DNA of 64,000 nucleotides from the NCBI GenBank assembly GCA_040285825.1, contig JAUPSS010000005.1:1798001-1862000 (forward strand). Direction: 5' to 3'. Each line of letters begins with the position of its first letter. Position 1 is the stretch's first letter. The notes under the pieces were generated by a model that did no database searches, was not told the origin of the DNA, and saw only the letters and a list, made by a program, of their open reading frames with translations. The translations under genes were made by a program, and so were the position numbers. This stretch comes from Eukaryota sp. TZLM1-RC. Taxonomy: Eukaryota > Protista > Metamonada: BaSk clade. Shown here piece by piece: positions 11,882 through 64,000 of the stretch.

Positions 11882-12102
11882 ATCAATTTATATCTGATAA
11901 ACATTGAGGAGGAGGGAGATAGAGTCTGATTCGCATGACTGTCAAAAATTGAATCTCTGAGTGCAATAGTCTAAAACAGCGAGGAATTTGAGTAATCGAA
12001 CAAGATGAACTATTTTGGAAAAAATAGTGGAAATAGAAATGAAATCATATGGGAAATTACCACAAATACACGATCGACTTTCGTGTGGAATAATTACAAA
12101 AA

Positions 12103-17900: not shown

Positions 17901-18323
17901 AAGAGGAAGATTTAGTGCGGATGACGTTTGCAAACAATTAACAATAGAAATATTTGTTTTCAGTCTCACTTTTTCGGTAATAATATCAGGACATTTTCTA
18001 ATGTTGTGACCAACCTTGCCACATTTGGAACAGGTATGTCTTCTTTTTTGCACTTTTTCAGGTGTAACATCAGGGGCATCACACAAAGGCAAAAACTCTT
18101 TTTTAAAAAATTTCAAATCTGAAATTTACTCATTCTTTTGCTCATCAGTTTTTCTTTTCAAAGGATTTGCATACTCTTTTCTCTTTTTGTTGAAAATCTT
18201 GTCAGGAGGGAGAAATTGGCCATCATGAGTTTGGTAAAAATGACCACACTGATAGGTTCCAAGATCAAAGCACATAACAGTGAAAAGACTTTGACTTGGG
18301 GTCATTGATTTGAATTGAATCAA
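14950..18323 (-). mobile_element. Decayed near full-length CRE-like RLE non-LTR retrotransposon (no RNase H seen)
   Basis: In order: CSKCGKVGHNIRKC knuckle, KGKAAGSSG, ARLVALVKP, FQFGI, DFKNAFDSV, AYMDD, LGGIGF, CKCGKPLLFTHLLNC, RGDLVVPG..ILD, KIAKY. AATAAA/A-rich tail at ~14950. Multiple frameshifts and stops. Confidence 0.9.
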
Positions 18324-42846: not shown

Positions 42847-43845
42847 TGCCTTTGAAAAATCGAAACGAATGGCGCAATTTACAGGAGAAGTTTTCAATTT
42901 ATGAATAGCACCATTGTTTGATCACATTTTGGTGTGAAAACATTGTTGCGTGAACTTTACATTGATAAAGAAAATTAGTTTTCTTTGTTATTTGACAGAA
43001 ACAAAAATAAAGTCCAAAAATTTACAGTTTCACTTTCATTTTGAATGTATTCTAGAAACAGATATCGTTTGTTTGATTTGAATCAAAAGGTGATCGTTTG
43101 TATATGGCAACGGTAACGCCATTTTCTGCACGATTATCATTCTTTTGATTAGATTAGTATTTCTCTCAAGATTTTGAGCTTTATACATCATTCATTTGAT
43201 TTGAATTCCTTTGTTGATAATCTTTTTACAACATTTGCGACAATTTATACATGGTTATCTTGCCTTTGAAAAAATGGAAACGAATGGCGCATTTTACATG
43301 AGAAGTTTTCAAGTTTATAAATACAGCATGTGTTCTTGATCACATTTATGGAGTAAAAAAACATTGTCGCGTGAACTTTTACATTGATAAAGAAAAATTA
43401 TTTTACTTTTGTTATTTGACAGAAACAGAAAAAATAAATTCTTAAAAAATTTACAGTTTCACTTTCATTTTGATTGTATTCTAGAAACAGATATCGTTTG
43501 TTTGATTTGAATCAAAAGGTGATCGTTTGTATATGGCAACGGTAACGCTATTTTCTGCACGATTATCATTCTTTTGATTAGGTCAGTATCTTTTTCAAAA
43601 TTTATGAGCTTTATACATCATTAAAACCAAAGTTCATGTCATTCATTTGATTTGAATTCCTTTGTTGATAATCTTTTTACAACATTTGCGACAATTTATA
43701 CATGGTTATCTTGCCTTTGAAAAAATCGAAACGAATGGCGCATTTTACAAGAGAAGTTTTCAAGTTTATAAATACAGCATGTGTTCTTGATCACATTTTT
43801 GGTGTAGAAAAACATTGTTGCGTGAACTTTTACATTGATAAAGAA
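42847..43845 (+). repeat. IGS sub-repeat, ~2.3 copies (414 bp, 451 bp, partial)
   Basis: TGCCTTTGAAAAA(A)T(C/G)GAAACGAATGGCGC starts at 42847, 43261 and 43712. Confidence 0.92.
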
Positions 43846-45248
43846 GTTTTTCTTTTTTTTATTAAACATAAATAAAAAATAAGTTTAAAATTTCATAAAT
43901 TCAACAAACACTTTTATTGCAAAATCAGTACACGAAACTAGATGCTCTATTGATCAAAAATACTGCACCAAAAAAGCTAAAACAATTTGTCATAGTTTTC
44001 ATTTGAAATCCCCATTTCTTATATGACAAAAAAAACTCCACACTTGACAATAAATCTTTGAATTGTAATATCCATATGAGTGTTTCAAACGCTGTTGAAT
44101 GTTATTGTGTTTTCACACTTTCTGTGAAAACATGCTTATGCACAAGTGATACAAGGCAGGTTTGATACATGAAGAAATGATTTATGTATTCTGTTTCAAT
44201 GGCAATCTTGAAAACAATAGTGTTGGCAGAAAAGATGATGTATGTACTGAAAAGAATACTGTCCAGGAAAACTTTATTATGATAGAGTCTTCATCAAAAA
44301 GAAAGTACAACGGTGAAGACATCAAGCCAATCCATGAACAATTGAGATCAAAAGAGTGATTGAGTCAAACGAAACACTTACAATAACCGATAGGTACAAG
44401 ATTTACGGAATAGAAATCCAAAATGCGCTAGGCAAGGCTGCTGCACTGATGGCAATTGTGATGCCTACCCTTCTGCCCCCAAGAATCATGGCACTAAGAG
44501 TATAATGTGTTTGAAGTTACAGACGCATCCCAAAGTCGGAGTACGGAAATGAGAAAAACCGCAGAAGGTTGCTCAGGTTGGAAGATCAGATTTTGGGTCT
44601 GGTTTCAAACTTCAGATTTTCCAATTTTGACATTGGAATTTTACCAACCCATTATCCAATAGATTTTGGTTCTGTTGTCCTGTTTTTTGTATAAACACGA
44701 ATCAAAGATTTCTAGTTACAGCATTTGCTGGTGTTGTTTCACAGTGATGACCATTATGGTCTAAAATTGTGGATTTTACAAAAAGGTTCTTTGTTTTATA
44801 CAAATTGATTCAAAATCATCCAAATGAGATCAGACCACAAAAAATGGCGAAACGTGAAATGGGGGTCAGGAAATGAAAGAAATTTTCATTTTTTTATCCC
44901 ATTTCGGAAAGTACTTGCTATTTGATCATTTTCAATTGATTGTTTTTAAATAATTTATGAAAATGTGAAAACAGCTCAATTGTTCATGTTGAACAAAATT
45001 TTGGTGTTGTATGTAAGCCTTAATGGAAACATTAAATTTTACTACACGTGTCGAATTTTATGGGAAATCATTTTTGATTGAAAATTTAAATTGACACATC
45101 AATAAGATTTGATTACATTTATCAGGATGTAATGGATCTTTATGGAAAGCACAAATGATCAACATTGATACAATCATATTTGATTGATTTCACAAAAGGT
45201 AACATTTATGAACTTTTCTGGTTTTTAATCGGAATGTTTTATTGTTGA
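43846..45248 (+). promoter_or_regulatory. Putative Pol I promoter and 5' ETS region
   Basis: Unique sequence between the IGS repeats and 18S. Inferred from position only. Confidence 0.6.
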
Positions 45249-46337
45249 TACCTGGTTGATCCTGCCAGTAGGCATATGCTTGTCTCAAAGATTAAGCCAT
45301 GCATGTCTAAGTTCAGGAGTTTTCTCCGAAACAGCGAATGGCTCATTAAATCAGTGATAATTTATTTGATAGTACTTACTACTTGGATAACCGTGGTAAT
45401 TCTAGAGCTAATACATGCAGCAAATACTTCTTTTGAAGTATGCATTTATTAGATACAAAACCAATCCTGGCAACAGGTCTTTGGTGAATCATAATAACTA
45501 TGCTGATCGCATGTCTTCGGACAGCGACATATCATTTAAATCACTGCCCTATCAACTAAATCGTAAGGTAGTGGCTTACGATGGTGATGACGGGTAACGG
45601 GGAATTAGGGTTTGATTCCGGAGAGGGAGCCTGAGAAATGGCTACCACATCCAAGGAAGGCAGCAGGCGCGAAAATTACCCAATCTCATTACGAGGAGGT
45701 AGTGACAAAAAATAACAATACTGGGCTCTTTTGAGTTCGTAATTGGAATGAGTACAACTTAAAACCTTTAACGAGGAGCTACTAGAGGGCAAGTCTGGTG
45801 CCAGCAGCCGCGGTAATTCCAGCTCTAGTAGTGTATCTTAAAATTGCTGCGTTTAAATCGTCCGTAGTTGAATCTCAGAATTTGCGTATCTTCAGGTTTT
45901 CCTGTTGGTAAACAGATTCTTCTGTCTGAGGACACTAGTCATTTGCTTCGGCGGTGGCTATTGAATTCAGACCGTTTACTTTGAAAAAATTAGAGTGTTC
46001 AAAGCAGGCTTTATGCAATTGAATAACTTAGCATGGAATAATAGAATAGGACTTTGGTTCTGTTTTATTGGTTTTGAGAACTAGAGTAATGATTAAAAGG
46101 GACAGTTGGGGGCATTAGTACTCCGGTGTCAGAGGTGAAATTCTTGGATTGCCGGATGACTAACTACTGCGAAAGCATTTGCCAAAGATGTTCTCATTAA
46201 TCAAGGTCGAAAGTTGGGGGATCGAAGACGATTAGACACCGTCGTAGTCTCAACCATAAACTATGCCGACTAGGGATTAGTAGGCGTTAAATACGACCCT
46301 ATTAGCACCTTATGGGAAACCATAAGTTCTTGGGTAA

Positions 46338-46396
<59 letters not shown>

Positions 46397-46845
46397 TTGT
46401 GGAGCCTGCGGCTTAATCTGACTCAACACGGAGAAACTTACCAGGTCCAGACGTGATAAGGATTGACAGATTGATAGCTCTTTCATGATCTTACGGTTAG
46501 TGGCGCATGGCCGTTCTTAGTTGGTGGAGTGATTTGTCTGGTTAATTCCGATAACGAACGAGATCTAAATTGCTAACTAGTTTTATTCTATTTTCGGATA
46601 GTTTGAACTTCTTAGCGAGACTGCTGTGGTTTTACACAGAGGAAGGTTTAGGCAATAACAGGTCTGTGATGCCCTTAGATGTTCTGGGCCGCACGCGCGC
46701 TACAATGGTAGGTACAACGAGTTTGTCCTTAACCGAAAGGTTTGGGTAATCTTGTGAATACCTATCTTGACTGGGATAGATCCTTGCAATTATGGGTCTT
46801 GAACGAGGAATAACTTGTAAGTGCATGTCATCAGCATGCGCTGAA

Positions 46846-46891
<46 letters not shown>

Positions 46892-47030
46892 GATGTTGAG
46901 GTGAAATGTTTGGACTCAATGGGTTAAGCTGCAAAGCAAGACTTGTTGGGAAAATTCAGTGAATCTTTGCATCTAGAGGAAGGAGAAGTCGTAACAAGGT
47001 ATCCGTAGGTGAACCTGCGGATGGATCATT
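45249..47030 (+). rRNA. 18S rRNA
   Basis: TACCTGGTTGATCCTGCCAG start, GTGCCAGCAGCCGCGGTAA, TTGTACACACCGCCC, GAACCTGCGGATGGATCATT end. Confidence 0.99.
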
Positions 47031-47128
47031 GTCGTTTGTGAGCTTGGCTTGCCAAGTTTCACTTTAACTGAAACCTAATACCGAACCAACCCTTTTTATT
47101 ATAAAAACTAATAGTTTCTATGAAACAT
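47031..47128 (+). other. ITS1 (~100 bp)
   Basis: Lies between the 18S end and the 5.8S start. Confidence 0.85.
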
Positions 47129-47291
47129 CCAACTTTCAGTGATGGATGTCTCGGCTCCTTTATCGATGAAGAACGCAGCGAATTGCGATACGTAATGTGA
47201 ATTGCAGAATCTGTGAATCATCGAAACTTTGAACGCAAATGGTAGTTCTTTAGAGCTTCGGCTTTATTGAACTATACTTGAATCAGCGTCG
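47129..47291 (+). rRNA. 5.8S rRNA
   Basis: AACTTTCAGTGATGGATGTCTCGGCTC, TCGATGAAGAACGCAGCG, GAATTGCAGAAT, CTTTGAACGCA. Ends approximate. Confidence 0.97.
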
Positions 47292-47448: not shown

Positions 47449-47798
47449 TTCGACCTGATTTCAAGTAAGATCACCCCCTGGACTTAAGCATATCAATAAG
47501 GGGAGGAAAAGAAAATAACTATGATTTCCTTAGTAGCGGCGAGCGAACAGGAAAAAGCTCAAGACTGAATCTTTATGATCTTTAGATTGTGAAGAGTTGT
47601 AGTCTATGGAAACCAGTATTCGGTTCTCGATGTATAAGTCCTTTGGAAAAGGGTATCATGGAAGGTGAAAATCCTGTAAATGACATCGAAGTAATTGATT
47701 CACTACTGATTTTCCGAGAGTCGCGCTGTTTGGGAATGCAGCGTTAAATGTGGGGTAAGTTTCCCATAAAGCTAAATATAAAAGGAGACCGATAGTTC

Positions 47799-47829
<31 letters not shown>

Positions 47830-48670
47830 TCTGAAGAGAGAGTTAAAAGTACCTGAAATCACTGAAAGGATAAGCGATTGGAACTTGATATTGATAGCTT
47901 CGGCTGTCTTGCGTTGGAGTGATTTTGAAAATTGAGTGATTGTGGGGAAGGTAGCTATAATGAACTTCGGTTTATTGTAGTGTTATAGCCTCATAAATTG
48001 TTCTTTTTAAGAATCAGGAATACGGTTTTACCGAGACTCCAACATAAAAGGTTCAATTGTCCCGTCTTGAAACACGGACCAAGGAGTGTATCTCTTCTGC
48101 AAGTCGTAGGGTGTAAAAACCTGAAGGCGAAATGAAAGTAATTTTATGAGGGGAAGTTTCGACTGCACCCTCAACCAGTCCTTGCAAAGGGATCTGAGTA
48201 TGAGCAGAATGGATACGACCCGAAAGCCGCTGAACTATGCCTGAATAGGATGAAGCCAGGGGAAACTCTGGTGGAAGTCCGTAGCGATGTTGACGTGCAA
48301 ATCACTCGTCAAATTTGGGTATAGGGGCGAAAGACTCATCGAAGCGGCTAGTAGCTGGTTACGTTCGAAGTTTCCCCCAGGATAGCTGGAGCTTGTTTTA
48401 GTTTTGTCCGGTAAAGCTAATGATTAGAGGTACTAGGGACGCAATGTCCTTAGCCTATTCTCAAACTTTAAATGGGCAAGATTTGTGATGATACTTAAGT
48501 GATCGTTGCAATTGAATAATAGCTCTAAGTGGGCCATTTTTGGTAAGCAGAACTGGCGATGTGGGATGCTCCAAAAGACATGTTAAGGTGCCTAAGTGTG
48601 CACTCATTTAGACCCCAGAAAAGGTGTTGGTTGATATTGACAGCAGGACGGTGGCCATGGAAGTCGGAAT

Positions 48671-48704
<34 letters not shown>

Positions 48705-49614
48705 TCAACTAGCCCTGAAAATTGATGGCGCTAAAGTGTGCCACCTATACATGTCCATTAATTCATTTTATGAGTTAATGTGTAGAACGTCGTGGGGGTT
48801 GCGTAGAAGGTTCATTGTGAAATGGACTGGAGCAGCCTCTAGTGCAGATCTTGGTGGTAGTAGCAAATAAACAAGTTGGAATCTTGTTGACCGAAGTGGA
48901 GTAGGGTTCCATGGTAAAGGTATTCTGCCATGGGTTAGTCGGTCCTAAGGCACAGGTTAACTCTTTGAGAGGGGGCTTTTATAGCTCCGTCCTGTCGAAA
49001 GGGAAGCAGGTTAATATTCCTGCACCAACAGTGGGTGTTCGTGGTAACACAATCGAATCTAGAGATGTCGGGGAGGATCCTGGGAAGAGTTATCTTTTCT
49101 TATTAACTGTCTATTGTCCATGGAATCTGTTTAACAGGAGAAGTGGATATAAGATAGGAAGAGCATTACGTTTTTGTAATGTCCGGTGTATTCTCAACGG
49201 CCCTTGAAAATCTAGAGGAGTAATCACTTCATTGTTGTCCGTACCGATAACCGCATCAGGTCTCCAAGGTGTGTAGCCTCTGGTCTATAGAAGAACGTAG
49301 GTAAGGGAAGTCGGCAAAATAGATCCGTAACTTCGGGATAAGGATTGGCTCTAGGGGCCTTGTGTAAGAGCCCTAGTGGTGACGCACTGAGCGTTGATGT
49401 GATTGGCAACAATTGCGTTGATGCGAGGTGTTGATCCATTGGGATTACTTTTATGCAATTAAAGGTCAACCTAGAACTGTAACGGACAAAGGGAACCCGA
49501 CTGTTTAATCGAAACAAAGCTTTCTGATGGCCGGAAACGGTGTTGACAGAAAGTGATTTCTGCTCAGTGCTCTGAATGTCATTGTGAAGAGATTCAATCA
49601 AGCACGGGTAAACA

Positions 49615-49659
<45 letters not shown>

Positions 49660-49660
49660 C

Positions 49661-49693
<33 letters not shown>

Positions 49694-49715
49694 GTTCCCA
49701 CTGTCCCTACCTACC

Positions 49716-49751
<36 letters not shown>

Positions 49752-49757
49752 TAATTC

Positions 49758-49795
<38 letters not shown>

Positions 49796-50154
49796 TGATA
49801 TTGTGAACCGATTCAGGAGGTGTAGCGTACAGGGGAGTAGATTTATCTACGCCAATGAAACACCCTGACTCTTGACATTGGTTTGCTAACTTAATTAATC
49901 CGAAACAGGTTTCCTGTTTCAAGATTTAAGTGTCTTCGGATACGATCGGATTTAAGGACATTGTCAGATGGGGAGTTTGGCTGGGGCGGCACATCTCCAA
50001 AATAATAACGGAGGTGTCCTAAGGTGAGCTCAATGAGAACAGAAATCTCATGTAGAACATAAGGGTAAAAGCTCACTTGATTTTGATTTTCAGTATGAAT
50101 ACAAACCAAGAAATTGTGGCCTAACGATCCTTTAACTATAAGAAACTTTTAGCT

Positions 50155-50197
<43 letters not shown>

Positions 50198-50299
50198 AGC
50201 CAAGCGTTCATAGCGACGTTGCTTTTTGATTCTTCGATGTCGGCTCTTCCTATCATTGAGAAGCAGAATTCTCAAAGCGTTGGATTGTTCACCCATTAA

Positions 50300-50355
<56 letters not shown>

Positions 50356-50751
50356 AATAATTGTCATCCTAATAGTAAAGCAACCCAGTACGAGAGGAAC
50401 CGTTGTTTCGCATAATTGGTATTTACGCTTATCTGAAAAGATATTGGTGTGAAGCTAACATGCGTTGGATTATAGCTGAACGCCTCTAAGCTAGTATCCA
50501 ACCTAGAAAGGATGATATATTGACCTGCAAATTTAATCGATAAAGATTAGGATTGTGTTTACACAGTCCCAATATCTCATCAGTGGGATTGATGTTTAGT
50601 CTAAGTACTATTCATTGATCATTGAAACTATGAAGATTCGCAGGATCATGAAACCTTGGCAGACGACCAAGATACGGAACTCATTGCTGTAAGTGTAAGA
50701 GTATGGTTTTTATACGATTTACTGAGGCTCATATGAAGTTCCTAGTTTCGT
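47449..50751 (+). rRNA. 28S rRNA (uninserted copy)
   Basis: CTTAAGCATATCAATAAG, CCGTCTTGAAACACGGACC, CTCTTAAGGTAGCCAAATG (R2 site, empty), GAGACAGGTTAGTTTTACCCTACTG, sarcin-ricin loop AGTACGAGAGGAAC. Ends approximate. Confidence 0.99.
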
Positions 50752-53700
50752 ATATTGACCAATGGTTGTTTATTACAATCATTGGTCAAATCTTTAAAGT
50801 CCATTTTGGGACAATTAATATAACAATTGTGGTGTTAAAGTCCGTGCTATGGTCATTTGATTAGTCATTGGTATGATTGGTTGAATGGTCATTGGTATGA
50901 TTAGATGAGTTGCATGTAGTCTTTATGTACTAGATGTGATCAACTTGTGATCAAACTTTGTGTGAAATTGTGTGTTAGTAATGTTGGCTATGTGTTACTT
51001 GATCAGTACAAACTCATGATTACATTTTCAAATGATTTTGTATATATTTGAATTAATTGAGTGTATTAATTTTTAAACATTAAATTGTAAAAAAAGTAAA
51101 AAATCAAAAAGTATACAATTGAATGTTGTAAACTAATAAAACAATTGCTGTAAGTGTAAGAGTATCGTTTTTGATACGATTTACTGAGGCTCATATGAAG
51201 TTCCTAGTTTCGTATATTGACCAATGGTTGTTTATTACAATCATTGGTCAAATCTTTAAAGTCCATTTTGGGACAATTAATATAACAATTGTGGTGTTAA
51301 AGTCCGTGCTATGGTCATTTGATTAGTCATTGGTATGATTGGTTGAATGGTCATTGGTATGATTAGATGAGTTGCATGTAGTCTTTATGTACTAGATGTG
51401 ATCAACTTGTGATCAAACTTTGTGTGAAATTGTGTGTTAGTAATGTTGGCTATGTGTTACTTGATCAGTACAAACTCATGATTACATTTTCAAATGATTT
51501 TGTATATATTTGAATTAATTGAGTGTATTAATTTTTAAACATTAAATTGTAAAAAAGTAAAAATCAAAAAGTATACAATTGAATGTTGTAAACTAATAAA
51601 ACAATTGCTGTAAGTGTAAGAGTATCGTTTTTGATACGATTTACTGAGGCTCATATGAAGTTCCTAGTTTCGTATATTGACCAATGGTTGTTTATTACAA
51701 TCATTGGTCAAATCTTTAAAGTCCATTTTGGGACAATTAATATAACAATTGTGGTGTTAAAGTCCGTGCTATGGTCATTTGAGTAGTCATTGGTATGATT
51801 GGTTGAATGGTCATTGGTATGATTAGATGAGTTGCATGTAGTCTTTATGTACTAGATGTGATCAACTTGTGATCAAACTTTGTGTGAAATTGTGTGTTAG
51901 TAATGTTGGCTATGTGTTACTTGATCAGTACAAACTCATGATTACATTTTCAAATGATTTTGTATATATTTGAATTAATTGAGTGTATTAATTTTTAAAC
52001 ATTAAATTGTAAAAAAAGTGAAAAATCAAAGTATACAATTGAATGTTGTAAACTAATAAAACAATTGCTGTAAGTGTAAGAGTATCGTTTTTGATACGAT
52101 TTACTGAGGCTCATATGAAGTTCCTAGTTTCGTATATTGACCAATGGTTGTTTATTACAATCATTGGTCAAATCTTTAAAGTCCATTTTGGGACAATTAA
52201 TATAACAATTGTGGTGTTAAAGTCCGTGCTATGGTCATTTGATTAGTCATTGGTATGATTGGTTGAATGGTCATTGGTATGATTAGATGAGTTGCATGTA
52301 GTCTTTATGTACTAGATGTGATCAACTTGTGATCAAACTTTGTGTGAAATTGTGTGTTAGTAATGTTGGCTATGTGTTACTTGATCAGTACAAACTCATG
52401 ATTACATTTTCAAATGATTTTGTATATATTTGAATTAATTGAGTGTATTAATTTTTAAACATTAAATTGTAAAAAAAGTAAAAAATCAAAAAGTATACAA
52501 TTGAATGTTGTAAACTAATAAAACAATTGCTGTAAGTGTAAGAGTATCGTTTTTGATACGATTTACTGAGGCTCATATGAAGTTCCTAGTTTCGTATATT
52601 GACCAATGGTTGTTTATTACAATCATTGGTCAAATCTTTAAAGTCCATTTTGGGACAATTAATATAACAATTGTGGTGTTAAAGTCCGTGCTATGGTCAT
52701 TTGATAGTCATTGGTATGATTGGTTGAATGGTCATTGGTATGATTAGATGAGTTGCATGTAGTCTTTATGTACTAGATGTGATCAACTTGTGATCAAACT
52801 TTGTGTGAAATTGTGTGTTAGTAATGTTGGCTATGTGTTACTTGATCAGTACAAACTCATGATTACATTTTCAAATGATTTTGTATATATTTGAATTAAT
52901 TGAGTGTATTAATTTTTAAACATTAAATTGTAAAAAAGTAAAAAATCAAAAAGTATACAATTGAATGTTGTAAACTAATAAAACAATTGCTGTAAGTGTA
53001 AGAGTATCGTTTTTGATACGATTTACTGAGGCTCATATGAAGTTCCTAGTTTCGTATATTGACCAATGGTTGTTTATTACAATCATTGGTCAAATCTTTA
53101 AAGTCCATTTTGGGACAATTAATATAACAATTGTGGTGTTAAAGTCCGTGCTATGGTCATTTGATAGTCATTGGTATGATTGGTTGAATGGTCATTGGTA
53201 TGATTAGATGAGTTGCATGTAGTCTTTATGTACTAGATGTGATCAACTTGTGATCAAACTTTGTGTGAAATTGTGTGTTAGTAATGTTGGCTATGTGTTA
53301 CTTGATCAGTACAAACTCATGATTACATTTTCAAATGATTTTGTATATATTTGAATTAATTGAGTGTATTAATTTTTAAACATTAAATTGTAAAAAAGTA
53401 AAAATCAAAAAGTATACAATTGAATGTTGTAAACTAATAAAACAATTGCTGTAAGTGTAAGAGTATCGTTTTTGATACGATTTACTGAGGCTCATATGAA
53501 GTTCCTAGTTTCGTATATTGACCAATGGTTGTTTATTACAATCATTGGTCAAATCTTTAAAGTCCATTTTGGGACAATTAATATAACAATTGTGGTGTTA
53601 AAGTCCGTGCTATGGTCATTTGATTAGTCATTGGTATGATTGGTTGAATGGTCATTGGTATGATTAGATGAGTTGCATGTAGTCTTTATGTACTAGATGT

Positions 53701-55616
53701 GATCAACTTGTGATCAAACTTTGTGTGAAATTGTGTGTTAGTAATGTTGGCTATGTGTTACTTGATCAGTACAAACTCATGATTACATTTTCAAATGATT
53801 TTGTATATATTTGAATTAATTGAGTGTATTAATTTTTAAACATTAAATTGTAAAAAAGTAAAAATCAAAAAGTATACAATTGAATGTTGTAAACTAATAA
53901 AACAATTGCTGTAAGTGTAAGAGTATCGTTTTTGATACGATTTACTGAGGCTCATATGAAGTTCCTAGTTTCGTATATTGACCAATGGTTGTTTATTACA
54001 ATCATTGGTCAAATCTTTAAAGTCCATTTTGGGACAATTAATATAACAATTGTGGTGTTAAAGTCCGTGCTATGGTCATTTGATAGTCATTGGTATGATT
54101 GGTTGAATGGTCATTGGTATGATTAGATGAGTTGCATGTAGTCTTTATGTACTAGATGTGATCAACTTGTGATCAAACTTTGTGTGAAATTGTGTGTTAG
54201 TAATGTTGGCTATGTGTTACTTGATCAGTACAAACTCATGATTACATTTTCAAATGATTTTGTATATATTTGAATTAATTGAGTGTATTAATTTTTAAAC
54301 ATTAAATTGTAAAAAAGTAAAAATCAAAAAGTATACAATTGAATGTTGTAAACTAATAAAACAATTGCTGTAAGTGTAAGAGTATCGTTTTTGATACGAT
54401 TTACTGAGGCTCATATGAAGTTCCTAGTTTCGTATATTGACCAATGGTTGTTTATTACAATCATTGGTCAAATCTTTAAAGTCCATTTTGGGACAATTAA
54501 TATAACAATTGTGGTGTTAAAGTCCGTGCTATGGTCATTTGATTAGTCATTGGTATGATTGGTTGAATGGTCATTGGTATGATTAGATGAGTTGCATGTA
54601 GTCTTTATGTACTAGATGTGATCAACTTGTGATCAAACTTTGTGTGAAATTGTGTGTTAGTAATGTTGGCTATGTGTTACTTGATCAGTACAAACTCATG
54701 ATTACATTTTCAAATGATTTTGTATATATTTGAATTAATTGAGTGTATTAATTTTTAAACATTAAATTGTAAAAAAAGTAAAAAATCAAAAAGTATACAA
54801 TTGAATGTTGTAAACTAATAAAACAATTGCTGTAAGTGTAAGAGTATCGTTTTTGATACGATTTACTGAGGCTCATATGAAGTTCCTAGTTTCGTATATT
54901 GACCAATGGTTGTTTATTACAATCATTGGTCAAATCTTTAAAGTCCATTTTGGGACAATTAATATAACAATTGTGGTGTTAAAGTCCGTGCTATGGTCAT
55001 TTGATTAGTCATTGGTATGATTGGTTGAATGGTCATTGGTATGATTAGATGAGTTGCATGTAGTCTTTATGTACTAGATGTGATCAACTTGTGATCAAAC
55101 TTTGTGTGAAATTGTGTGTTAGTAATGTTGGCTATGTGTTACTTGATCAGTACAAACTCATGATTACATTTTCAAATGATTTTGTATATATTTGAATTAA
55201 TTGAGTGTATTAATTTTTAAACATTAAATTGTAAAAAAAGTAAAAAATCAAAAAGTATACAATTGAATGTTGTAAACTAATAAAACAATTGCTGTAAGTG
55301 TAAGAGTATCGTTTTGATACGATTTACTGAGGCTCATATGAAGTTCCTAGTTTCGTATATTGACCAATGGTTGTTTATTACAATCATTGGTCAAATCTTT
55401 AAAGTCCATTTTGGGACAATTAATATAACAATTGTGGTGTTAAAGTCCGTGCTATGGTCATTTGATTAGTCATTGGTTGAATGGTCATTGGTATGATTAG
55501 ATGAGTTGCATGTAGTCTTTATGTACTAGATGTGATCAACTTGTGATCAAACTTTGTGTGAAATTGTGTGTTAGTAATGTTGGCTATGTGTTACTTGATC
55601 AGTACAAACTCATGAT
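50683..55616 (+). repeat. ~461-bp satellite, ~10.7 copies; first unit overlaps the 28S 3' end
   Basis: Same unit as 28971-42846. It starts within 28S at ATTGCTGTAAG and is cut at ...AAACTCATGAT. Confidence 0.98.
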
Positions 55617-58600
55617 GTCCTATCTCCCTGTTCCCACCGCCATTGTATGAGGCAGACATCTCTTACAGGGTTTTTTATGCCCTCAAAGTCTCAACCTTCT
55701 TTATCTCCTTCAGAATTCTCTTCTCTTTTGGAAGGTCTAGAAGAGTCCAACATGACTGCCGATGTCAGCGGCATCGAGCAGAATAGCCCTAGTGCTATAG
55801 AGCTGTCCGTGGCAGATTCTCATGAATCTGGCCGAAATCTAGTGTTGGCTTCTTCCTATGACCAAACTCCACATTTATATGCGGAAGATAAGTCCTCTTT
55901 CTCCATTTCACAACTTACCTCTGATGACCCACCCACTTCCTCCGATCAACTTTGCACTGACCCTTCCTCAGATTCTTTCAATCACATTTCTCCAATCTCC
56001 GTTTCAGACGCTACTGAATTCTCTCTTCAAACAGCGCACTCTGATCCAGATAGTTCTCACCTTGCAACTCCATATGATAGTTATCAGCGCTCACCTGGTC
56101 TAGTGGATAAGACCTTTGACTCAGAGGTTGCGGTCCTGAGTTCGAATCCCACCACACGCACATTGTCTAGTGCCTCTCCATTGGGAGGTGCTAATTCCAG
56201 CGATTCTCGTAGTGAGCTTCGGCTCGCTACAAATAACCACTGTGGTGGGAAGGGGGGTTTTTGCTCTGTGTCCCTTTGTGATGATCCCCTCTCTGCTGAT
56301 CTCCAAAATTTAGACCAAATTTCAGGTGTTTGTCAAAATCGTAGAGAAAGAAAGTTCTGCTGCTTTGTCTCGCTCTGCCCCAGAACTGAACCGTTCTCTA
56401 AGCGGTCTGGGTTGACAAGGCATTTGATGAAAATGCATCCTGATGTCAGCCTTGATGTCTTAAAAGCCAATGGATACACAAGATGTAGCTGCTCTGACAT
56501 CATTTCTGTAGAAGGCATCGGGATGCATATAACTAAGAAAGGTTGTGCATTTTCTCTCAGTGAATCTGTCAATAATTCAGAGAGTCCTCTTCTTCCTTCT
56601 GAGGACTCTCCTATTCAATTGTACCATCAACCGATTAACCCAAGCCAACGTTATGGTCTTGGGTTTGGGTATCAACAGGGCCCTCTTGTGACTGAACCTG
56701 TTCGAGATATTTCACATCCACCTGTTTGTCCTTCTGACCTTGATAGTTCTCCTGTTGTCTCTTTTGATGCCAATGATGATGGTGATGAATCTAATCCAAT
56801 CATACTTCCTGATGACGATGGCCACATACTTGAATCGAATGCTTCCTCTGATATGGATGTTAATGTGAATCCCTTGGAGATTTACACAGATGGATCTTTT
56901 CTCAAGAAAAGAAATAAATCTGGCTTTGGGGGCTTTTATACTTTCAAGGATAAGCGATTCGAAATTTATGGCCCATCACGCCACAACACCCATAACGCAG
57001 CTGAGTTTGAAGCTGTTTTGATGACCATTAAATCCTTAGTGTTGCTCTCTCACTGTCCACAACACATTATCATTTTTTCTGACAGTAGCCTTGTTGTTGA
57101 TTCTCTTAACCTAAAAGCATCCCTAAAGAATCCTACTGTCAAAAGAATCCGCAGCCAAATAAAGGATCTCATAAATAGTTCTCGTTTTAGACTATTCTCC
57201 TTCTCCTTTAAGAAAGTGTTGGCACATTCTGACAATACCAATAATAATGTTGCTGATGTTTTAGCAAAACGTGGCGCTAATGGCTCTGAATGTTCACTGC
57301 TGAAGTATTTAAGAACACGTTATCATGTCCTTGAAGGCCCTATACCACTTTGTTCATTACCACCTGACCACTGTGAACACATTGCTGATAGTGATCCCCT
57401 TGACTCGTCCATTTTAGAAAAATCACACAATTGTCCTATCTGTCCCAGTTTCTTTTCCAAAGCAAGATCCTTATGCTGCCATATTGATACGCACCACTCC
57501 TCTATAGACACTGACACATTACACATTAATAATCTGGTTCGCTGCCCAGTTTGCTTGAAGGTATTCTCATCGGTTGGTTTTGACAACCATTTCAAACGTC
57601 ATGAGTCACCGACTCTAGATATGCCCTGTATTTCTGATTCTTTATTTATTCAGCTGAGCAATGAAATTGCAAGCTTCACTTACAAACGGCTCAGTGATCG
57701 TCCCTCATTCCGCTCTGCAGTCAAGTTGGTCACCCATTCTTCCCTGCCAATGGAACAAAAATGTAGATATCTTCTAGTGCTACCGGTAGTTTGCCTAAAG
57801 CTGGACAAAGGCTCATCACTTTTTAAACTTTTCCGATTCCAACACAGGGTTCACAAATTTAATATTGGTCAATGCGAAGATACTTCTTCCTTCTTTTGTA
57901 ACACAACCCCCATCAGACCACATACATTTAGCAATCGAGTCAATATAAAGAGAGTCAAAGAACTTATTCACGACAACGAACTGAGTCGCGCTATGAATCT
58001 GCTATCAAGAGAACCACCAACAGCAAACATAACTAATAACTCCATGCTAGAGCAATTGCAACACCTCCATCCAGCTGATCCAAATTTTTGTCAATATAAC
58101 AATATGCTAACTGAACACTACTCCTACCACGACTCCTCTTCCGTAGCTGACGCAATCCTTAATTCCCCTATGACGGAAGGTGGCCCCTCCCACTGGCATG
58201 CCAAACTTTTGAAACAGTGTATTGATGACCACTTGGTGTCATGTGTACAGTATATAGCAAACGGCCTGCTCAGTGGCAAAATAAGTGAGCCCCTCAGACG
58301 TGTTCTCACTTCCAGTAGATTGCTCGCCATCCCAAAGAAAAGTAATGGAGTGCGGCCCTTGGCAGTTGGAGAACTATTTTACCGCATTGCTGCCGGCCTT
58401 GCGCTATCTAAAGTAAATGTTGACTATTTGATCAATTCAAATCAATATGGCGTGAAAGTCCCTGGTGGTGGTGAAGCTATTGTCCATTCAATTCGTAGTA
58501 ATCTAGGCCTATCTTTCGAAAAACTGATCAAGTTTGATGTGCGCAATGCATTCAATGAGGTCGATCGTTGTCAGCTTGCCCAAGCTGTTGCTGAATATTG

Positions 58601-60201
58601 TCCTTTGCTGTTCCCATTCTTTAAAGCTAGCTATCTGAGCCCTTCCACATTACATTTTAGAAACTCAGTTATTTTCTCAGAACGTGGTGTTCGACAAGGC
58701 GATCCCCTCGGTCCCTTGCTATTTTCAACTGCCCTTGTCCCGTTTACAACACAGCTCCGTACCCTGCACCCATCCTGTCATTTTTATTTGTATTTAGATG
58801 ACCTCTTTGTTCTTTGCAACGACCATGAAACTGATGCTATTGTTGGGACTGTTTCAAGCTTTATCCAAGACATTGGTCTTGAAGTCAATCTTGACAAAAC
58901 TGCTGTTGTCTCTAGCAATGACAATTTCGAGGTGCTTGGTGCACATTTTGGCCCAAACGCCGAAGATGATCTTTCAAGCTCACTCCCACCAATGACTAGT
59001 TCTCTGTTGAAATGTCTCGAATCGCTGACGTTACAAGAGCAATTGCTTCTTGTGAGACACTGCATCAACACCAAACTGTCCTTTCATGCACGTGTTCATC
59101 GCCCAGCAGTCAGCAAGAATCCCCTCATTAGTTGTTTTCATCAAATAGTTTCTTTTGTTTCTTCGGCACTTGGGGTTGTTCCTTTGTTTCCTCAGTTGAT
59201 TTCTCTCCCGTCAGCCAGATTTGGAGGACTCGGTCTCACAAATTATGGGGAAATAGCTCATTTGTGCTTCGCAGCCTCCTACATCACCAGCAATAGGACT
59301 TTAAACCTCTTCCACTCTTCATTGCCACTTGATGATTTAGATCTTATGTGCGCTGAATCATTATTTCATGAACTTGGTACAGCTACCAACTCCCCCAACT
59401 TATCAAAACTTCAAGCTCTCTTAACTCAAAACCACTTTTTGGAGACTCTGAATTCTTTGACTAGGGACTTTAGATCCAAGCCTGCTGTACTCGCTTCATT
59501 TAGGTCGCCGGTAACTGACCCAGCCATAGCACCCATCCCAATCAAATATGAAAACGACGTTCTAATCAATTGCAAACCACTGTCTCAATCACTTTTATTT
59601 ATCAATCCATCTGAGGAACCTGTTGACGATTCATTGCTCAAGTATTTCTTAAGAACCCGCCTCCTCTGTTCTGAATTTGTACATCACTGTCCCTTTTGTA
59701 AACATGAATCCAATTCTCAGTATCATTCAGCCAATTGCGAACAACTATCATCTATGCGAATTAGAAGACATGATGATGTGGTTGAATTGATATCGCAACT
59801 GACAGGCTTACTCAAAGAACAGAACGTAGGTAACGGCAGAGTTGACCTTATTCGTCCCGATGGCAGCGAGTGTTATGACCTCACTTTAGTCGGTGGATAT
59901 TCTACCCCTCTCAATACACTGATTGAACGCCGTAGAATGTCGAAAATTGGTAAATATTCTCACCATGTTCCTTTGGTTCCACTAATCGCATTTCCTTCTG
60001 GAGGCATCGAACGAAGTTTTGTAAATTTTTTGCGTAAAAAAGAGATAGGCTCTTATGGGAAAAAAATATCGCTGTCATTTATAAGATCATGCTTTAAAAT
60101 GAGCAAAGTGTATGCCCGACTTGCCATTTGTGATCTTAGTGATGATTGATCGCTTTAGTTATAGTTTCTTCATTGTGATTGAACATTTCTTTCTTTAATA
60201 A
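55617..60201 (+). mobile_element. RLE-type (CRE-like) non-LTR retrotransposon with RNase H, 3'-joined to 28S rDNA
   Basis: Single intact ORF, 30-nt leader and ~52-nt 3' UTR ending in AATAAA, followed immediately by 28S sequence matching 50352 onward. Confidence 0.95.
55647..60149 (+). CDS. 1500-aa retrotransposon protein: PIP box, zinc fingers, RNase H, zinc fingers, reverse transcriptase, CCHC knuckle, restriction-like endonuclease
   Basis: QTSLTGFF; C2H2/C2HC fingers ~56355-56546; IYTDGS..NAAEFEA..FSDS..AHSD..NVADVLAK ~56874-57280; two C2H2 fingers ~57432-57602; RPLAVGE, FDVRNAFN, GVRQGDPLGP, YLDD (58791), FGGLGL; CPFC..H..C, RRHDDVV, RVDLIRPD..YDLT, KIGKY. Confidence 0.97.
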   Translation: MRQTSLTGFFMPSKSQPSLSPSEFSSLLEGLEESNMTADVSGIEQNSPSAIELSVADSHESGRNLVLASSYDQTPHLYAEDKSSFSISQLTSDDPPTSSDQLCTDPSSDSFNHISPISVSDATEFSLQTAHSDPDSSHLATPYDSYQRSPGLVDKTFDSEVAVLSSNPTTRTLSSASPLGGANSSDSRSELRLATNNHCGGKGGFCSVSLCDDPLSADLQNLDQISGVCQNRRERKFCCFVSLCPRTEPFSKRSGLTRHLMKMHPDVSLDVLKANGYTRCSCSDIISVEGIGMHITKKGCAFSLSESVNNSESPLLPSEDSPIQLYHQPINPSQRYGLGFGYQQGPLVTEPVRDISHPPVCPSDLDSSPVVSFDANDDGDESNPIILPDDDGHILESNASSDMDVNVNPLEIYTDGSFLKKRNKSGFGGFYTFKDKRFEIYGPSRHNTHNAAEFEAVLMTIKSLVLLSHCPQHIIIFSDSSLVVDSLNLKASLKNPTVKRIRSQIKDLINSSRFRLFSFSFKKVLAHSDNTNNNVADVLAKRGANGSECSLLKYLRTRYHVLEGPIPLCSLPPDHCEHIADSDPLDSSILEKSHNCPICPSFFSKARSLCCHIDTHHSSIDTDTLHINNLVRCPVCLKVFSSVGFDNHFKRHESPTLDMPCISDSLFIQLSNEIASFTYKRLSDRPSFRSAVKLVTHSSLPMEQKCRYLLVLPVVCLKLDKGSSLFKLFRFQHRVHKFNIGQCEDTSSFFCNTTPIRPHTFSNRVNIKRVKELIHDNELSRAMNLLSREPPTANITNNSMLEQLQHLHPADPNFCQYNNMLTEHYSYHDSSSVADAILNSPMTEGGPSHWHAKLLKQCIDDHLVSCVQYIANGLLSGKISEPLRRVLTSSRLLAIPKKSNGVRPLAVGELFYRIAAGLALSKVNVDYLINSNQYGVKVPGGGEAIVHSIRSNLGLSFEKLIKFDVRNAFNEVDRCQLAQAVAEYCPLLFPFFKASYLSPSTLHFRNSVIFSERGVRQGDPLGPLLFSTALVPFTTQLRTLHPSCHFYLYLDDLFVLCNDHETDAIVGTVSSFIQDIGLEVNLDKTAVVSSNDNFEVLGAHFGPNAEDDLSSSLPPMTSSLLKCLESLTLQEQLLLVRHCINTKLSFHARVHRPAVSKNPLISCFHQIVSFVSSALGVVPLFPQLISLPSARFGGLGLTNYGEIAHLCFAASYITSNRTLNLFHSSLPLDDLDLMCAESLFHELGTATNSPNLSKLQALLTQNHFLETLNSLTRDFRSKPAVLASFRSPVTDPAIAPIPIKYENDVLINCKPLSQSLLFINPSEEPVDDSLLKYFLRTRLLCSEFVHHCPFCKHESNSQYHSANCEQLSSMRIRRHDDVVELISQLTGLLKEQNVGNGRVDLIRPDGSECYDLTLVGGYSTPLNTLIERRRMSKIGKYSHHVPLVPLIAFPSGGIERSFVNFLRKKEIGSYGKKISLSFIRSCFKMSKVYARLAICDLSDD

Positions 60202-60602
60202 ACTGAATAATTGTCATCCTAATAGTAAAGCAACCCAGTACGAGAGGAACCGTTGTTTCGCATAATTGGTATTTACGCTTATCTGAAAAGATATTGGTGT
60301 GAAGCTAACATGCGTTGGATTATAGCTGAACGCCTCTAAGCTAGTATCCAACCTAGAAAGGATGATATATTGACCTACAAATTTAATCGATAAAGATTAG
60401 GATTGTGTTTACACAGTCCCAATATCTCATCAGTGGGATTGATGTTTAGTCTAAGTACTATTCATTGATCATTGAAACTATGAAGATTCGCAGGATCATG
60501 AAACCTTGGTAGACGACCAAGATACGGAACTCATTGCTGTAAGTGTAAGAGTATCGTTTTTGATACGATTTACTGAGGCTCATATGAAGTTCCTAGTTTC
60601 GT
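60202..60602 (+). pseudogene. Orphan 3' fragment of 28S rRNA (~400 nt, includes the sarcin-ricin loop)
   Basis: Matches 50352-50751 except G50527>A60377, C50660>T60510 and a satellite-type terminal hairpin. Confidence 0.97.
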
Positions 60603-63600
60603 ATATTGACCAATGGTTGTTTATTACAATCATTGGTCAAATCTTTAAAGTCCATTTTGGGACAATTAATATAACAATTGTGGTGTTAAAGTCCGTGCTA
60701 TGGTCATTTGAGTAGTCATTGGTATGATTGGTTGAATGGTCATTGGTATGATTAGATGAGTTGCATGTAGTCTTTATGTACTAGATGTGATCAACTTGTG
60801 ATCAAACTTTGTGTGAAATTGTGTGTTAGTAATGTTGGCTATGTGTTACTTGATCAGTACAAACTCATGATTACATTTTCAAATGATTTTGTATATATTT
60901 GAATTAATTGAGTGTATTAATTTTTAAACATTAAATTGTAAAAAAGTAAAAAATCAAAAGTATACAATTGAATGTTGCAAACTAATAAAACAATTGCTGT
61001 AAGTGTAAGAGTATCGTTTTGATACGATTTACTGAGGCTCATATGAAGTTCCTAGTTTCGTATATTGACCAATGGTTGTTTATTACAATCATTGGTCAAA
61101 TCTTTAAAGTCCATTTTGGGACAATTAATATAACAATTGTGGTGTTAAAGTCCGTGCTATGGTCATTTGATTAGTCATTGGTATGATTGGTTGAATGGTC
61201 ATTGGTATGATTAGATGAGTTGCATGTAGTCTTTATGTACTAGATGTGATCAACTTGTGATCAAACTTTGTGTGAAATTGTGTGTTAGTAATGTTGGCTA
61301 TGTGTTACTTGATCAGTACAAACTCATGATTACATTTTCAAATGATTTTGTATATATTTGAATTAATTGAGTGTATTAATTTTTAAACATTAAATTGTAA
61401 AAAAGTAAAAAATCAAAAGTATACAATTGAATGTTGTAAACTAATAAAACAATTGCTGTAAGTGTAAGAGTATCGTTTTTGATACGATTTACTGAGGCTC
61501 ATATGAAGTTCCTAGTTTCGTATATTGACCAATGGTTGTTTATTACAATCATTGGTCAAATCTTTAAAGTCCATTTTGGGACAATTAATATAACAATTGT
61601 GGTGTTAAAGTCCGTGCTATGGTCATTTGATTAGTCATTGGTATGATTGGTTGAATGGTCATTGGTATGATTAGATGAGTTGCATGTAGTCTTTATGTAC
61701 TAGATGTGATCAACTTGTGATCAAACTTTGTGTGAAATTGTGTGTTAGTAATGTTGGCTATGTGTTACTTGATCAGTACAAACTCATGATTACATTTTCA
61801 AATGATTTTGTATATATTTGAATTAATTGAGTGTATTAATTTTTAAACATTAAATTGTAAAAAAGTAAAAAATCAAAAAGTATACAATTGAATGTTGTAA
61901 ACTAATAAAACAATTGCTGTAAGTGTAAGAGTATCGTTTTTGATACGATTTACTGAGGCTCATATGAAGTTCCTAGTTTCGTATATTGACCAATGGTTGT
62001 TTATTACAATCATTGGTCAAATCTTTAAAGTCCATTTTGGGACAATTAATATAACAATTGTGGTGTTAAAGTCCGTGCTATGGTCATTTGATTAGTCATT
62101 GGTATGATTGGTTGAATGGTCATTGGTATGATTAGATGAGTTGCATGTAGTCTTTATGTACTAGATGTGATCAACTTGTGATCAAACTTTGTGTGAAATT
62201 GTGTGTTAGTAATGTTGGCTATGTGTTACTTGATCAGTACAAACTCATGATTACATTTTCAAATGATTTTGTATATATTTGAATTAATTGAGTGTATTAA
62301 TTTTTAAACATTAAATTGTAAAAAAAGTAAAAAATCAAAAAGTATACAATTGAATGTTGTAAACTAATAAAACAATTGCTGTAAGTGTAAGAGTATCGTT
62401 TTGATACGATTTACTGAGGCTCATATGAAGTTCCTAGTTTCGTATATTGACCAATGGTTGTTTATTACAATCATTGGTCAAATCTTTAAAGTCCATTTTG
62501 GGACAATTAATATAACAATTGTGGTGTTAAAGTCCGTGCTATGGTCATTTGATTAGTCATTGGTATGATTGGTTGAATGGTCATTGGTATGATTAGATGA
62601 GTTGCATGTAGTCTTTATGTACTAGATGTGATCAACTTGTGATCAAACTTTGTGTGAAATTGTGTGTTAGTAATGTTGGCTATGTGTTACTTGATCAGTA
62701 CAAACTCATGATTACATTTTCAAATGATTTTGTATATATTTGAATTAATTGAGTGTATTAATTTTTAAACATTAAATTGTAAAAAAGTAAAAAATCAAAA
62801 GTATACAATTGAATGTTGTAAACTAATAAAACAATTGCTGTAAGTGTAAGAGTATCGTTTTGATACGATTTACTGAGGCTCATATGAAGTTCCTAGTTTC
62901 GTATATTGACCAATGGTTGTTTATTACAATCATTGGTCAAATCTTTAAAGTCCATTTTGGGACAATTAATATAACAATTGTGGTGTTAAAGTCCGTGCTA
63001 TGGTCATTTGATTAGTCATTGGTATGATTGGTTGAATGGTCATTGGTATGATTAGATGAGTTGCATGTAGTCTTTATGTACTAGATGTGATCAACTTGTG
63101 ATCAAACTTTGTGTGAAATTGTGTGTTAGTAATGTTGGCTATGTGTTACTTGATCAGTACAAACTCATGATTACATTTTCAAATGATTTTGTATATATTT
63201 GAATTAATTGAGTGTATTAATTTTTAAACATTAAATTGTAAAAAAGTAAAAAATCAAAAAGTATACAATTGAATGTTGTAAACTAATAAAAACAATTGCT
63301 GTAAGTGTAAGAGTATCGTTTTTGATACGATTTACTGAGGCTCATATGAAGTTCCTAGTTTCGTATATTGACCAATGGTTGTTTATTACAATCATTGGTC
63401 AAATCTTTAAAGTCCATTTTGGGACAATTAATATAACAATTGTGGTGTTAAAGTCCGTGCTATGGTCATTTGATTAGTCATTGGTATGATTGGTTGAATG
63501 GTCATTGGTATGATTAGATGAGTTGCATGTAGTCTTTATGTACTAGATGTGATCAACTTGTGATCAAACTTTGTGTGAAATTGTGTGTTAGTAATGTTGG

Positions 63601-64000
63601 CTATGTGTTACTTGATCAGTACAAACTCATGATTACATTTTCAAATGATTTTGTATATATTTGAATTAATTGAGTGTATTAATTTTTAAACATTAAATTG
63701 TAAAAAAGTAAAAATCAAAAGTATACAATTGAATGTTGTAAACTAATAAAACAATTGCTGTAAGTGTAAGAGTATCGTTTTGATACGATTTACTGAGGCT
63801 CATATGAAGTTCCTAGTTTCGTATATTGACCAATGGTTGTTTATTTCAATCATTGGTCAAATCTTTAAAGTCCATTTTGGGACAATTAATATAACAATTG
63901 TGGTGTTAAAGTCCGTGCTATGGTCATTTGATTAGTCATTGGTATGATTGGTTGAATGGTCATTGGTATGATTAGATGAGTTGCATGTAGTCTTTATGTA
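60533..64000 (+). repeat. ~461-bp satellite, at least 7.5 copies, runs off the window
   Basis: Same unit as the upstream arrays. Confidence 0.98.

Follow-up and report, generated by a model that had tools for sequence, protein, structure and literature searches.

The window analysed here, 64,000 nucleotides of contig JAUPSS010000005.1 from the metamonad strain TZLM1-RC, contains at 55617-60201 (+) a 4,585-bp retrotransposon without long terminal repeats (a non-LTR retrotransposon), whose 3′ end runs directly into a fragment of the 28S ribosomal RNA (rRNA) gene. With a non-LTR reverse transcriptase (RT), one open reading frame (ORF), a C-terminal CCHC motif and restriction-like endonuclease (RLE), and a precise 3′ junction, the element is an RLE-type (R2-group) non-LTR retrotransposon. 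We estimate a probability of about 85% that the lineage to which it belongs is specific for one 28S site, which lies downstream of the R2 site by 710 nt and precedes the sarcin-ricin loop by 35 nt, judging from junctions compared between copies, families and species. The same comparisons make a well-supported case for a new lineage of 28S-site-specific RLE retrotransposons in a protist, its site being set against the R2 position only. An earlier note, made from the letters of the window alone, had proposed specificity for a non-R2 site in 28S and a protist host; the first is borne out by the same junction recurring in two families and two species, and the second by closely similar proteins, which come from ‘Eukaryota sp. 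TZLM1-RC’ and ‘GEM-RC1’. Strain TZLM1-RC is presumably Skoliomonas litria (Metamonada), an anaerobic free-living flagellate.

The element and its junction with 28S

Rfam places one full ribosomal DNA (rDNA) unit in the window, with 18S at 45249-47031, 5.8S at 47131-47291 and 28S at 47451-50751. Self-comparison resolves the spacer into 461-bp tandem repeats (28971-42846, 50683-55616 and 60533-64000); about 30 of them lie upstream of the rDNA unit, and about 10.7 separate it from the element. In each repeat the first ~69 nt copy the 3′ terminus of 28S (the repeat starting 69 nt before the Rfam 28S end), and downstream spacer follows. Inside the 28S gene the R2 site (…TTAAGG/TAGCC…, the slash marking the junction) is uninterrupted at 49641/49642, so that the distance given in the earlier note, ~710 nt downstream of an empty R2 site, is correct. 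The target used by the element reads …TTTTACCCT/ACTGA…, and the sarcin-ricin loop motif starts at 50387, 35 nt 3′ of the junction.

Directly 3′ of the element, 60202-60532 is identical to 28S 50352-50682. The base preceding the junction is a T in the intact 28S gene and an A in the element, which ends …TTTAATAA at 60201 without poly-A, and the 3′ junction is therefore exact at 50351/50352; the earlier note had the position right, but the one-nucleotide ambiguity that it allowed does not exist. At the other end (55616/55617), the element adjoins position 338 of a 461-bp intergenic-spacer repeat rather than 28S, and so does not simply lie inside a 28S gene. Apart from rDNA, self-comparison detected no terminal repeats around the element, and no LTRs. 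A single ORF of at least 100 aa is present in 54000-62000, at 55647-60149 (+), encoding 1500 aa free of stops. That this frame specifies an RT and an RLE, as the earlier note described, agrees with Pfam RVT_1 and with the CCHC and RLE motifs; the RNase H domain and the spacer 5′ flank had been overlooked. The parts of the element and its flanks are as follows.

50331-50372 (+): empty target of the intact 28S gene, with the point of insertion after 50351 (T) and before 50352 (A)
50683-55616 (+): about 10.7 spacer repeats of 461 bp each, between the intact 28S and the element 5′ end
55617-55646 (+): 5′ untranslated region (UTR), 30 nt
55617-56717 (+): 5′ 1.1 kb, aa 1-357, Ser-rich region and first zinc finger
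55647-60149 (+): single ORF, 1500 aa plus stop
56361-56438 (+): C2H2 zinc finger 1, aa 239-264 (weak Pfam match and motif scan)
56874-57278 (+): RNase H domain, aa 410-544 (Pfam; acidic-residue motifs by eye)
57432-57602 (+): C2H2 zinc fingers 2 and 3, aa 596-617 and 633-652 (weak Pfam matches and motif scan)
58329-58946 (+): reverse transcriptase core, aa 895-1100 (Pfam RVT_1)
59688-59738 (+): CCHC motif, aa 1348-1364 (motif scan; near-invariant C/C/H/C alignment columns)
59754-59996 (+): predicted restriction-like endonuclease region, RHD…PD…D-L-T…K (motif scan by eye and regular expression, and structural alignment)
60150-60201 (+): 3′ UTR, 52 nt, ending TTTAATAA
60202-60532 (+): 28S 3′ fragment equal to 50352-50682, with two rare variants common only to the L003a copy described below
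60533-64000 (+): spacer repeats after the 28S fragment, running to the contig end

The element matches no Rfam family, HDV-like (hepatitis delta virus) ribozymes included, at E up to 1, and the predicted fold of its 3′ UTR is not significant (z −0.5). About 13 nt (CCCTGCAACTCAC) found at the 5′ end of other copies are missing from the window copy. Contig JAUPSS010000005.1 ends in spacer repeats 4.2 kb past the ORF, with TTAGGG absent from that end.

One junction in two families and two species

The genomes of S. litria and Skoliomonas sp. GEM-RC1 are both nanopore plus Illumina assemblies. Contigs encoding related proteins were mapped for element, rDNA and spacer, and the loci were labelled L001-L010. 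The family of the window element, family 1, comprises seven copies diverging by 0.04-2.3% (0.04-0.5% among those on contig 7), and only the window copy has an uninterrupted ORF. A second family in S. litria, family 2 (P0003/P0070), is ~40-48% identical to family 1 at the amino acid level over the RT-RLE region. The copies are listed below.

Window copy, contig 5: full length; 5′ junction at spacer position 338
L002a and L005a (the latter the same copy as L002b), contig 7: full length; 5′ junction at spacer position 89 plus T-run and CCCTGCAACTCAC
L005b, contig 7: 3′-truncated, ending at element position 4140; 5′ junction at spacer position 89 plus T-run and CCCTGCAACTCAC
L003b, contig 1: full length; 5′ junction as in the contig-7 copies (position 89)
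L003a, contig 1: from element position 1541; 5′ junction at spacer position 446, with 4 filler nucleotides
L001, contig 2, not in rDNA: begins at element position 1603; 5′ mosaic of other repeats
Family 2, L006:10518-15158, S. litria contigs 1 and 14 (together with L007): full length with one frameshift
Family 2, L007:9537-13502, S. litria contigs 1 and 14 (together with L006): 5′-truncated

Every family-1 rDNA copy that retains its 3′ end continues into 28S from exactly 50352. Both family-2 copies end …GATTTAATAA immediately before the same nucleotide, and a decayed relative in GEM-RC1, ~46-50% identical in the RT-RLE amino acid sequence, ends …TATAAAAA immediately before the homologous position. 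Nine rDNA 3′ junctions thus coincide (six of family 1 including the window copy, two of family 2 and one of GEM-RC1), a tally based on rDNA copies with the 3′ end kept, L005b being 3′-truncated. Tabulated over the two assemblies, as the earlier note had recommended, the rDNA 3′ flanks are not random, and all of them begin at this 28S nucleotide. At least five different junctions are found at the 5′ end: spacer positions 89 (plus filler), 338 and 446 in family 1, spacer position 382 and the inside of a third RT element after a T22 run in family 2, and GEM-RC1's own spacer. Such a variety of 5′ junctions combined with one 3′ junction indicates that the shared 3′ junction arose repeatedly.

The RT tree groups these sequences in a single clade (support 97/91), in which the GEM-RC1 element is sister to family 1, family 2 branches next (100/99), and a third, 18S-inserting family lies outside them. 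This Skoliomonas clade stands apart from Diplonema, Closterium and environmental groups, and far from Giardia, R2-like and APE-type sequences. Across the three lineages at the 28S site the RT-RLE proteins are only ~40-50% identical, as against 99-100% identity of the 28S tails to functional 28S. The presence of a second family and a second species at the same nucleotide, within one clade and with gene-like tails, argues for repeated, long-term insertion, like that of R2, rather than for a frozen accident. Environmental relatives at L009 and L010 have no rRNA flanks.

Sequence conservation around the site suggests how it may be recognised. Upstream of the junction, 60 nt of 28S are identical between S. 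litria and GEM-RC1, and the downstream sequence differs; given this species-divergent 3′ side, target recognition would rely on the conserved 5′ side. Families 1 and 2 share 96% nucleotide identity over their first ~1.1 kb, the remainder being only 40-57% identical in protein, which suggests that this 5′ 1.1 kb is an N-terminal finger module exchanged between the families by recombination or template switching.

Family 3 spans L006:21472-25124 and continues into L003:1-3401, with an ORF of at least 1408 aa that has no RNase H match. Its 3′ end is joined at 18S 1202/1203 (window equivalent 46450/46451) and its 5′ end to spacer resembling an external transcribed spacer (ETS), at window ~43806, representing an unambiguous 2.6-kb upstream deletion.

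The only family-1 copy outside rDNA, L001, could be taken as a sign that the element is not site-specific at all, and that one chance landing in rDNA was simply amplified along with the rDNA. At L001 the native target is …CACC/AACTGC… and the copy reads …TAATA/AACTGC…, so that the ACTG of 28S is kept. This native site matches the 28S target at 14 of 30 positions, clustered in GGTT, TT, CC and ACTG; the ectopic site therefore itself resembles the 28S target. Together with the use of one nucleotide by two families in two species with different 5′ junctions, this makes a chance landing very unlikely. The ectopic insertion fits either of two readings: recognition loose enough to accept a look-alike site, or priming by a read-through transcript with downstream 28S bases, as is known for R2 templates. 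The patchwork of other repeats on the 5′ side of the copy would agree with template switching. The copy is flanked by a ~746-bp tandem repeat with 217-aa ORFs (L001:5606-15672), which also occurs in the window at 11620-11882 and 15106-15853 (-), and which begins AACTGCTTTACG right after the apparent 3′ end of another element.

A chimeric join of element and rDNA made during assembly, at a repeat-rich contig end, has also to be considered. The window copy does lie near a contig end that stops in repeats, 4.2 kb away, and the array on contig 7 adjoins inverted rDNA. The same architecture is found on contigs 1, 5, 7 and 14, however, and again in the separate assembly of another species, and we regard such an artefact as barely credible. 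The rDNA loci that we could see sit at contig ends and are transcribed outward, with the exception of the internal locus on contig 7. The inverted-orientation rDNA there follows L005b after ~1.2 kb (L005:12520-18390) and represents either a head-to-head rDNA junction or a mis-join of contig 7.

Elsewhere in the window, sub-repeats 84-89% identical to each other occupy 42847-43894, in the 2.4-kb region between the spacer repeats and 18S; L005 and L006 carry the same region in repeated and rearranged form. Decayed mobile elements occur in the unique DNA to the left of the rDNA, where fragments at 14265-14807 (-) and 16008-16733 (-) have the exonuclease domain of a DNA polymerase B (E 1.6e-5) and an RT domain (E 2.5e-5).

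Spacer DNA at the 5′ end and the spread of copies

The 5′ junctions join the elements to spacer DNA kilobases from 28S, and the upstream flank is always the continuation of the downstream flank. In the window, 50352-55616 precedes the element and 60202 onward follows it; at L006 the element has spacer, the ETS-like region and the beginning of family 3 on either flank. GEM-RC1 has a decayed element in every 22.7-kb rDNA super-unit (L004 and L008; contig JAUFOQ010000012.1), in which a 28S tail and 5.7 kb of spacer are also duplicated and each spacer copy has a 5S rRNA gene. The 5.7-kb block (L004 3006-8716) recurs at 13969-19691, and the identity between two super-units that lie 70 kb from each other is 99.3%. 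At the 5′ junctions we see truncations, T-runs and filler nucleotides.

The 5′ outcome is either a multi-kilobase target duplication or the loss of the ETS-18S-5.8S-28S 5′ part of one unit. Spacer identity is the same in register and out of register (99.3 vs 99.4%), and duplication and deletion are equivalent modulo one rDNA unit. Long target duplications can occur in such elements, as in R9 (126 bp). The distant 5′ join could possibly arise from second-strand priming at a distant spacer 3′ end, or from survivorship, if canonical insertions disappear or are counterselected in a genome whose rDNA units are few. In S. litria, co-mobilisation of the 28S tail by read-through RNA is a further possibility. 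A preference of 5′ ends for spacer is not significant by itself, as spacer makes up ~75% of the unit, and what stands out is that no 5′ junction is local. A model in which a co-transcript of element and 28S tail enters the spacer repeats was rejected as a general account, fitting S. litria but not GEM-RC1 with its non-repetitive 5.7-kb duplication; we keep it as a possible secondary route. It is speculation that the T-run plus CCCT at 5′ ends is a remnant of the upstream 28S (…TTTTACCCT), of which the A is missing.

Comparison of coding changes gives an indirect view of activity. Between copies of different junction types, the ratio of non-synonymous to synonymous change (pN/pS) is 0.11-0.47, implying that many of the differences accumulated while the lineages concerned still depended on transposition; the window copy and L003a differ by 13 synonymous and 10 non-synonymous changes, which look selected. 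Among the copies with the common junction at spacer position 89 (type-89 copies) the ratio is 0.64-0.69, and these look mostly like DNA-level duplicates in decay. The pattern supports past activity of several lineages, and makes it plausible that the window copy is a candidate active master. The earlier note's description of the element as young and probably active is accordingly borne out only indirectly, through the one intact copy in seven and pN/pS below 1.

Several observations weigh against site-specific insertion. In neither species is there a copy with 28S on its 5′ side, so a canonical insertion is not seen. Several copies are DNA-level duplicates, as judged from the contig-7 divergence of 0.04-0.5% and the GEM-RC1 super-units, and the window copy and L003a share three rare flank variants in all, in the 28S tail and the first spacer repeat; an element and its 28S tail can thus move as one, whether through duplication of DNA or through read-through. 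A single copy among the seven of family 1 is intact, and all junctions rest on two public nanopore-based assemblies of repeats.

These points can be accommodated by one or a few chance fusions, long ago, of an element to the last 331 nt of 28S, after which a unit of element and 28S tail (with or without spacer) spread by segmental duplication, unequal crossing-over or read-through transcripts priming on homologous spacer repeats, with no current endonuclease recognition of 28S. Such an origin would account for a 5′ flank that is always spacer, for the rare variants common to the window copy and L003a, and for type-89 copies that occur on two contigs with one 5′ junction and a pN/pS of ~0.65. 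It also agrees with the array-level duplication of the GEM-RC1 copies, with the opening of the spacer repeat itself by a copy of the last ~69 nt of 28S, and with a spacer/18S junction at L007 that lacks any element. It would require, however, either repeated insertion or constant gene conversion to explain how three lineages, ~40-50% identical in RT-RLE, share one junction and have tails 99-100% gene-like. The GEM-RC1 spacer, moreover, has no 28S-end repeats on which to prime, and its duplicated block measures 5.7 kb; the ectopic copy, for its part, has no 28S tail beyond ACTG. We consider propagation of a fused unit unlikely as the general explanation. Recurrent insertion at the 28S site remains our preferred account, with the addition that duplication at the DNA level multiplied several of the other copies within subterminal rDNA loci.

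The junction without an element, at L007:15292, joins spacer-repeat position ~73-80, past the 28S 3′-end copy, to 18S (window 46791) with a 3-nt TAT overlap, and might be a 5′-truncated pre-rRNA retrocopy or a rearrangement.

Protein architecture, relatives and meaning

The encoded protein is unusual in its domain order, having in succession a Ser-rich N-terminus, a C2H2 zinc finger, RNase H, two further C2H2 fingers, RT, CCHC and RLE. In Pfam, aa 895-1100 match RVT_1 (E 1.4e-21), aa 410-544 match RNase H (E 5.8e-15), and the C2H2 matches are weak. C-terminal of the CCHC motif lies the RLE motif set RHD…PD…D-L-T…K, whose columns are near-invariant in the protein alignment; the C-terminal part is a predicted CCHC plus PD-(D/E)XK RLE-type endonuclease. 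No APE domain was matched in Pfam, nor was a Myb domain at E up to 1, in agreement with the earlier note, which had recognised none; the N-terminus lies outside the folded region, and a cryptic Myb-like fold is possible there.

We modelled aa 700-1500 with AlphaFold from a 12-sequence alignment (predicted local distance difference test 76, predicted template modelling score 0.74). The best PDB matches of the model are R2Tg and R2Bm at the initiation of target-primed reverse transcription (Foldseek E ~1e-20, template modelling score 0.57-0.60), with 695 model residues aligned by the structural aligner to R2 chain residues 272-1169, through the RLE; LINE-1 reverse transcriptases are also among the best matches. 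At the sequence level, similarity to the R2 proteins in the PDB is marginal (E 5e-4). A protein search with the RNase H and finger region gave no matches outside Skoliomonas, and a protein atlas search returned generic RT clusters only.

R2 is the best structural match among known systems. It shares with the Skoliomonas element a single ORF with N-terminal zinc fingers, RT, CCHC and C-terminal RLE, the lack of poly-A, a precise 3′ junction in 28S with variable 5′ junctions and 5′ truncations, and long-term vertical persistence at one site. In contrast to R2, the Skoliomonas element has its target 710 nt downstream, lacks a detectable Myb domain or HDV-like ribozyme, carries RNase H and two extra fingers upstream of the RT, is joined at its 5′ end to spacer kilobases away, and is hosted by a metamonad; sequence similarity between the two is marginal, as given above. 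R2 proper has been reported only from animals (PMC5035012). Membership of the R2 clade proper was rejected, given the uninterrupted R2 site, the missing Myb match, the marginal sequence match and an RT that groups elsewhere; on the RT tree an R2-like beetle protein falls outside the Skoliomonas clade, with APE-type and Giardia sequences.

Elements of the CRE clade (SLACS/CZAR/CRE of trypanosomatids) are likewise RLE-type, zinc-finger-bearing and site-specific elements of protists, but neither spliced-leader genes nor telomeres are the Skoliomonas target, which is 28S. CRE-like, the type proposed in the earlier note, is a candidate placement, as is NeSL/Utopia. Among database proteins that bear a name, the nearest relative comes from Diplonema and was auto-named after SLACS; it occupies a neighbouring clade on the RT tree. 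A Giardia RT/endonuclease is a distant match (profile E 3.7e-13) and lies far off on the tree; the Giardia elements GilM and GilT have been placed in the CRE clade (PMC10088271), and Giardia elements form head-to-tail arrays in subtelomeric rDNA-bearing regions (PMC10999387). Among RLE elements, RNase H upstream of the RT has been described only in oomycete Utopia of the NeSL clade, where its position was called unique (PMC4640811). Utopia resembles the Skoliomonas element in this respect and differs in its target, U2 snRNA as opposed to 28S, and there were no oomycete proteins among the matches of protein searches with the element protein. With no relatives of the RNase H and finger region outside Skoliomonas, the RNase H may be an independent acquisition.

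Conserved rRNA gene sites also serve as a safe niche for R1, R4, R5, R6, R8, R9, Anopheles RT1/RT2, planarian LIN9/24/26 and Pokey, all of which, unlike the Skoliomonas element, are from animals. From expansion-segment lengths we suspect that Anopheles RT1 lies somewhat upstream of the element site. Our literature search returned no paper linking a non-LTR element to a site beside the sarcin-ricin loop.

On the pattern of R2, insertion would proceed as follows. The protein would bind the 28S sequence, probably through its zinc fingers, since the N-terminal finger module is common to both S. litria families at the site. The RLE would then nick the antisense strand between the T and the A, and the freed 3′-OH would prime reverse transcription from the element 3′ end (target-primed reverse transcription). 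The template was probably a read-through RNA with downstream 28S bases, as suggested by the ectopic copy, which keeps ACTG at a site of AACTG microhomology. RNase H would remove the RNA strand, and the 5′ end would then be joined to a distant spacer 3′ end, giving the permuted unit of spacer, element, 28S tail and spacer.

Beyond this, we put forward tentatively, as the less probable course, that integration is coupled to kilobase-scale rearrangement of the rDNA. Once priming at the 28S nick had taken place, the second strand would start at a 3′ end in the spacer, for instance one at a stalled fork or at a terminator within those repeats that have the 28S-end copy. Each event would then leave a promoter-distal block, made up of spacer, element, 28S tail and again spacer, on the distal edge of a subterminal rDNA locus, and read-through RNAs would co-mobilise the tail. 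If true, this would be a mode of integration unlike that of R2, and would amount to a retrotransposon-driven building or renewal of chromosome-end rDNA.

To our knowledge, R2-type site-specific rDNA retrotransposons are known almost only from animals. The elements described here extend that range, with good support, to a deep-branching, free-living protist, in which two species and at least two families have kept to a single 28S nucleotide. On the 5′ side of the nick, the sequence belongs to a strongly conserved segment of large-subunit rRNA beside the peptidyl-transferase centre; an enzyme for this target would give RNA-templated gene insertion a second landing site in multicopy rDNA. The position of the RNase H domain and the apparently exchanged finger module constitute a natural experiment on how target specificity is encoded. 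Finally, the constant, kilobase-distant 5′ junction may reveal how integration can be completed without a local second-strand cut.

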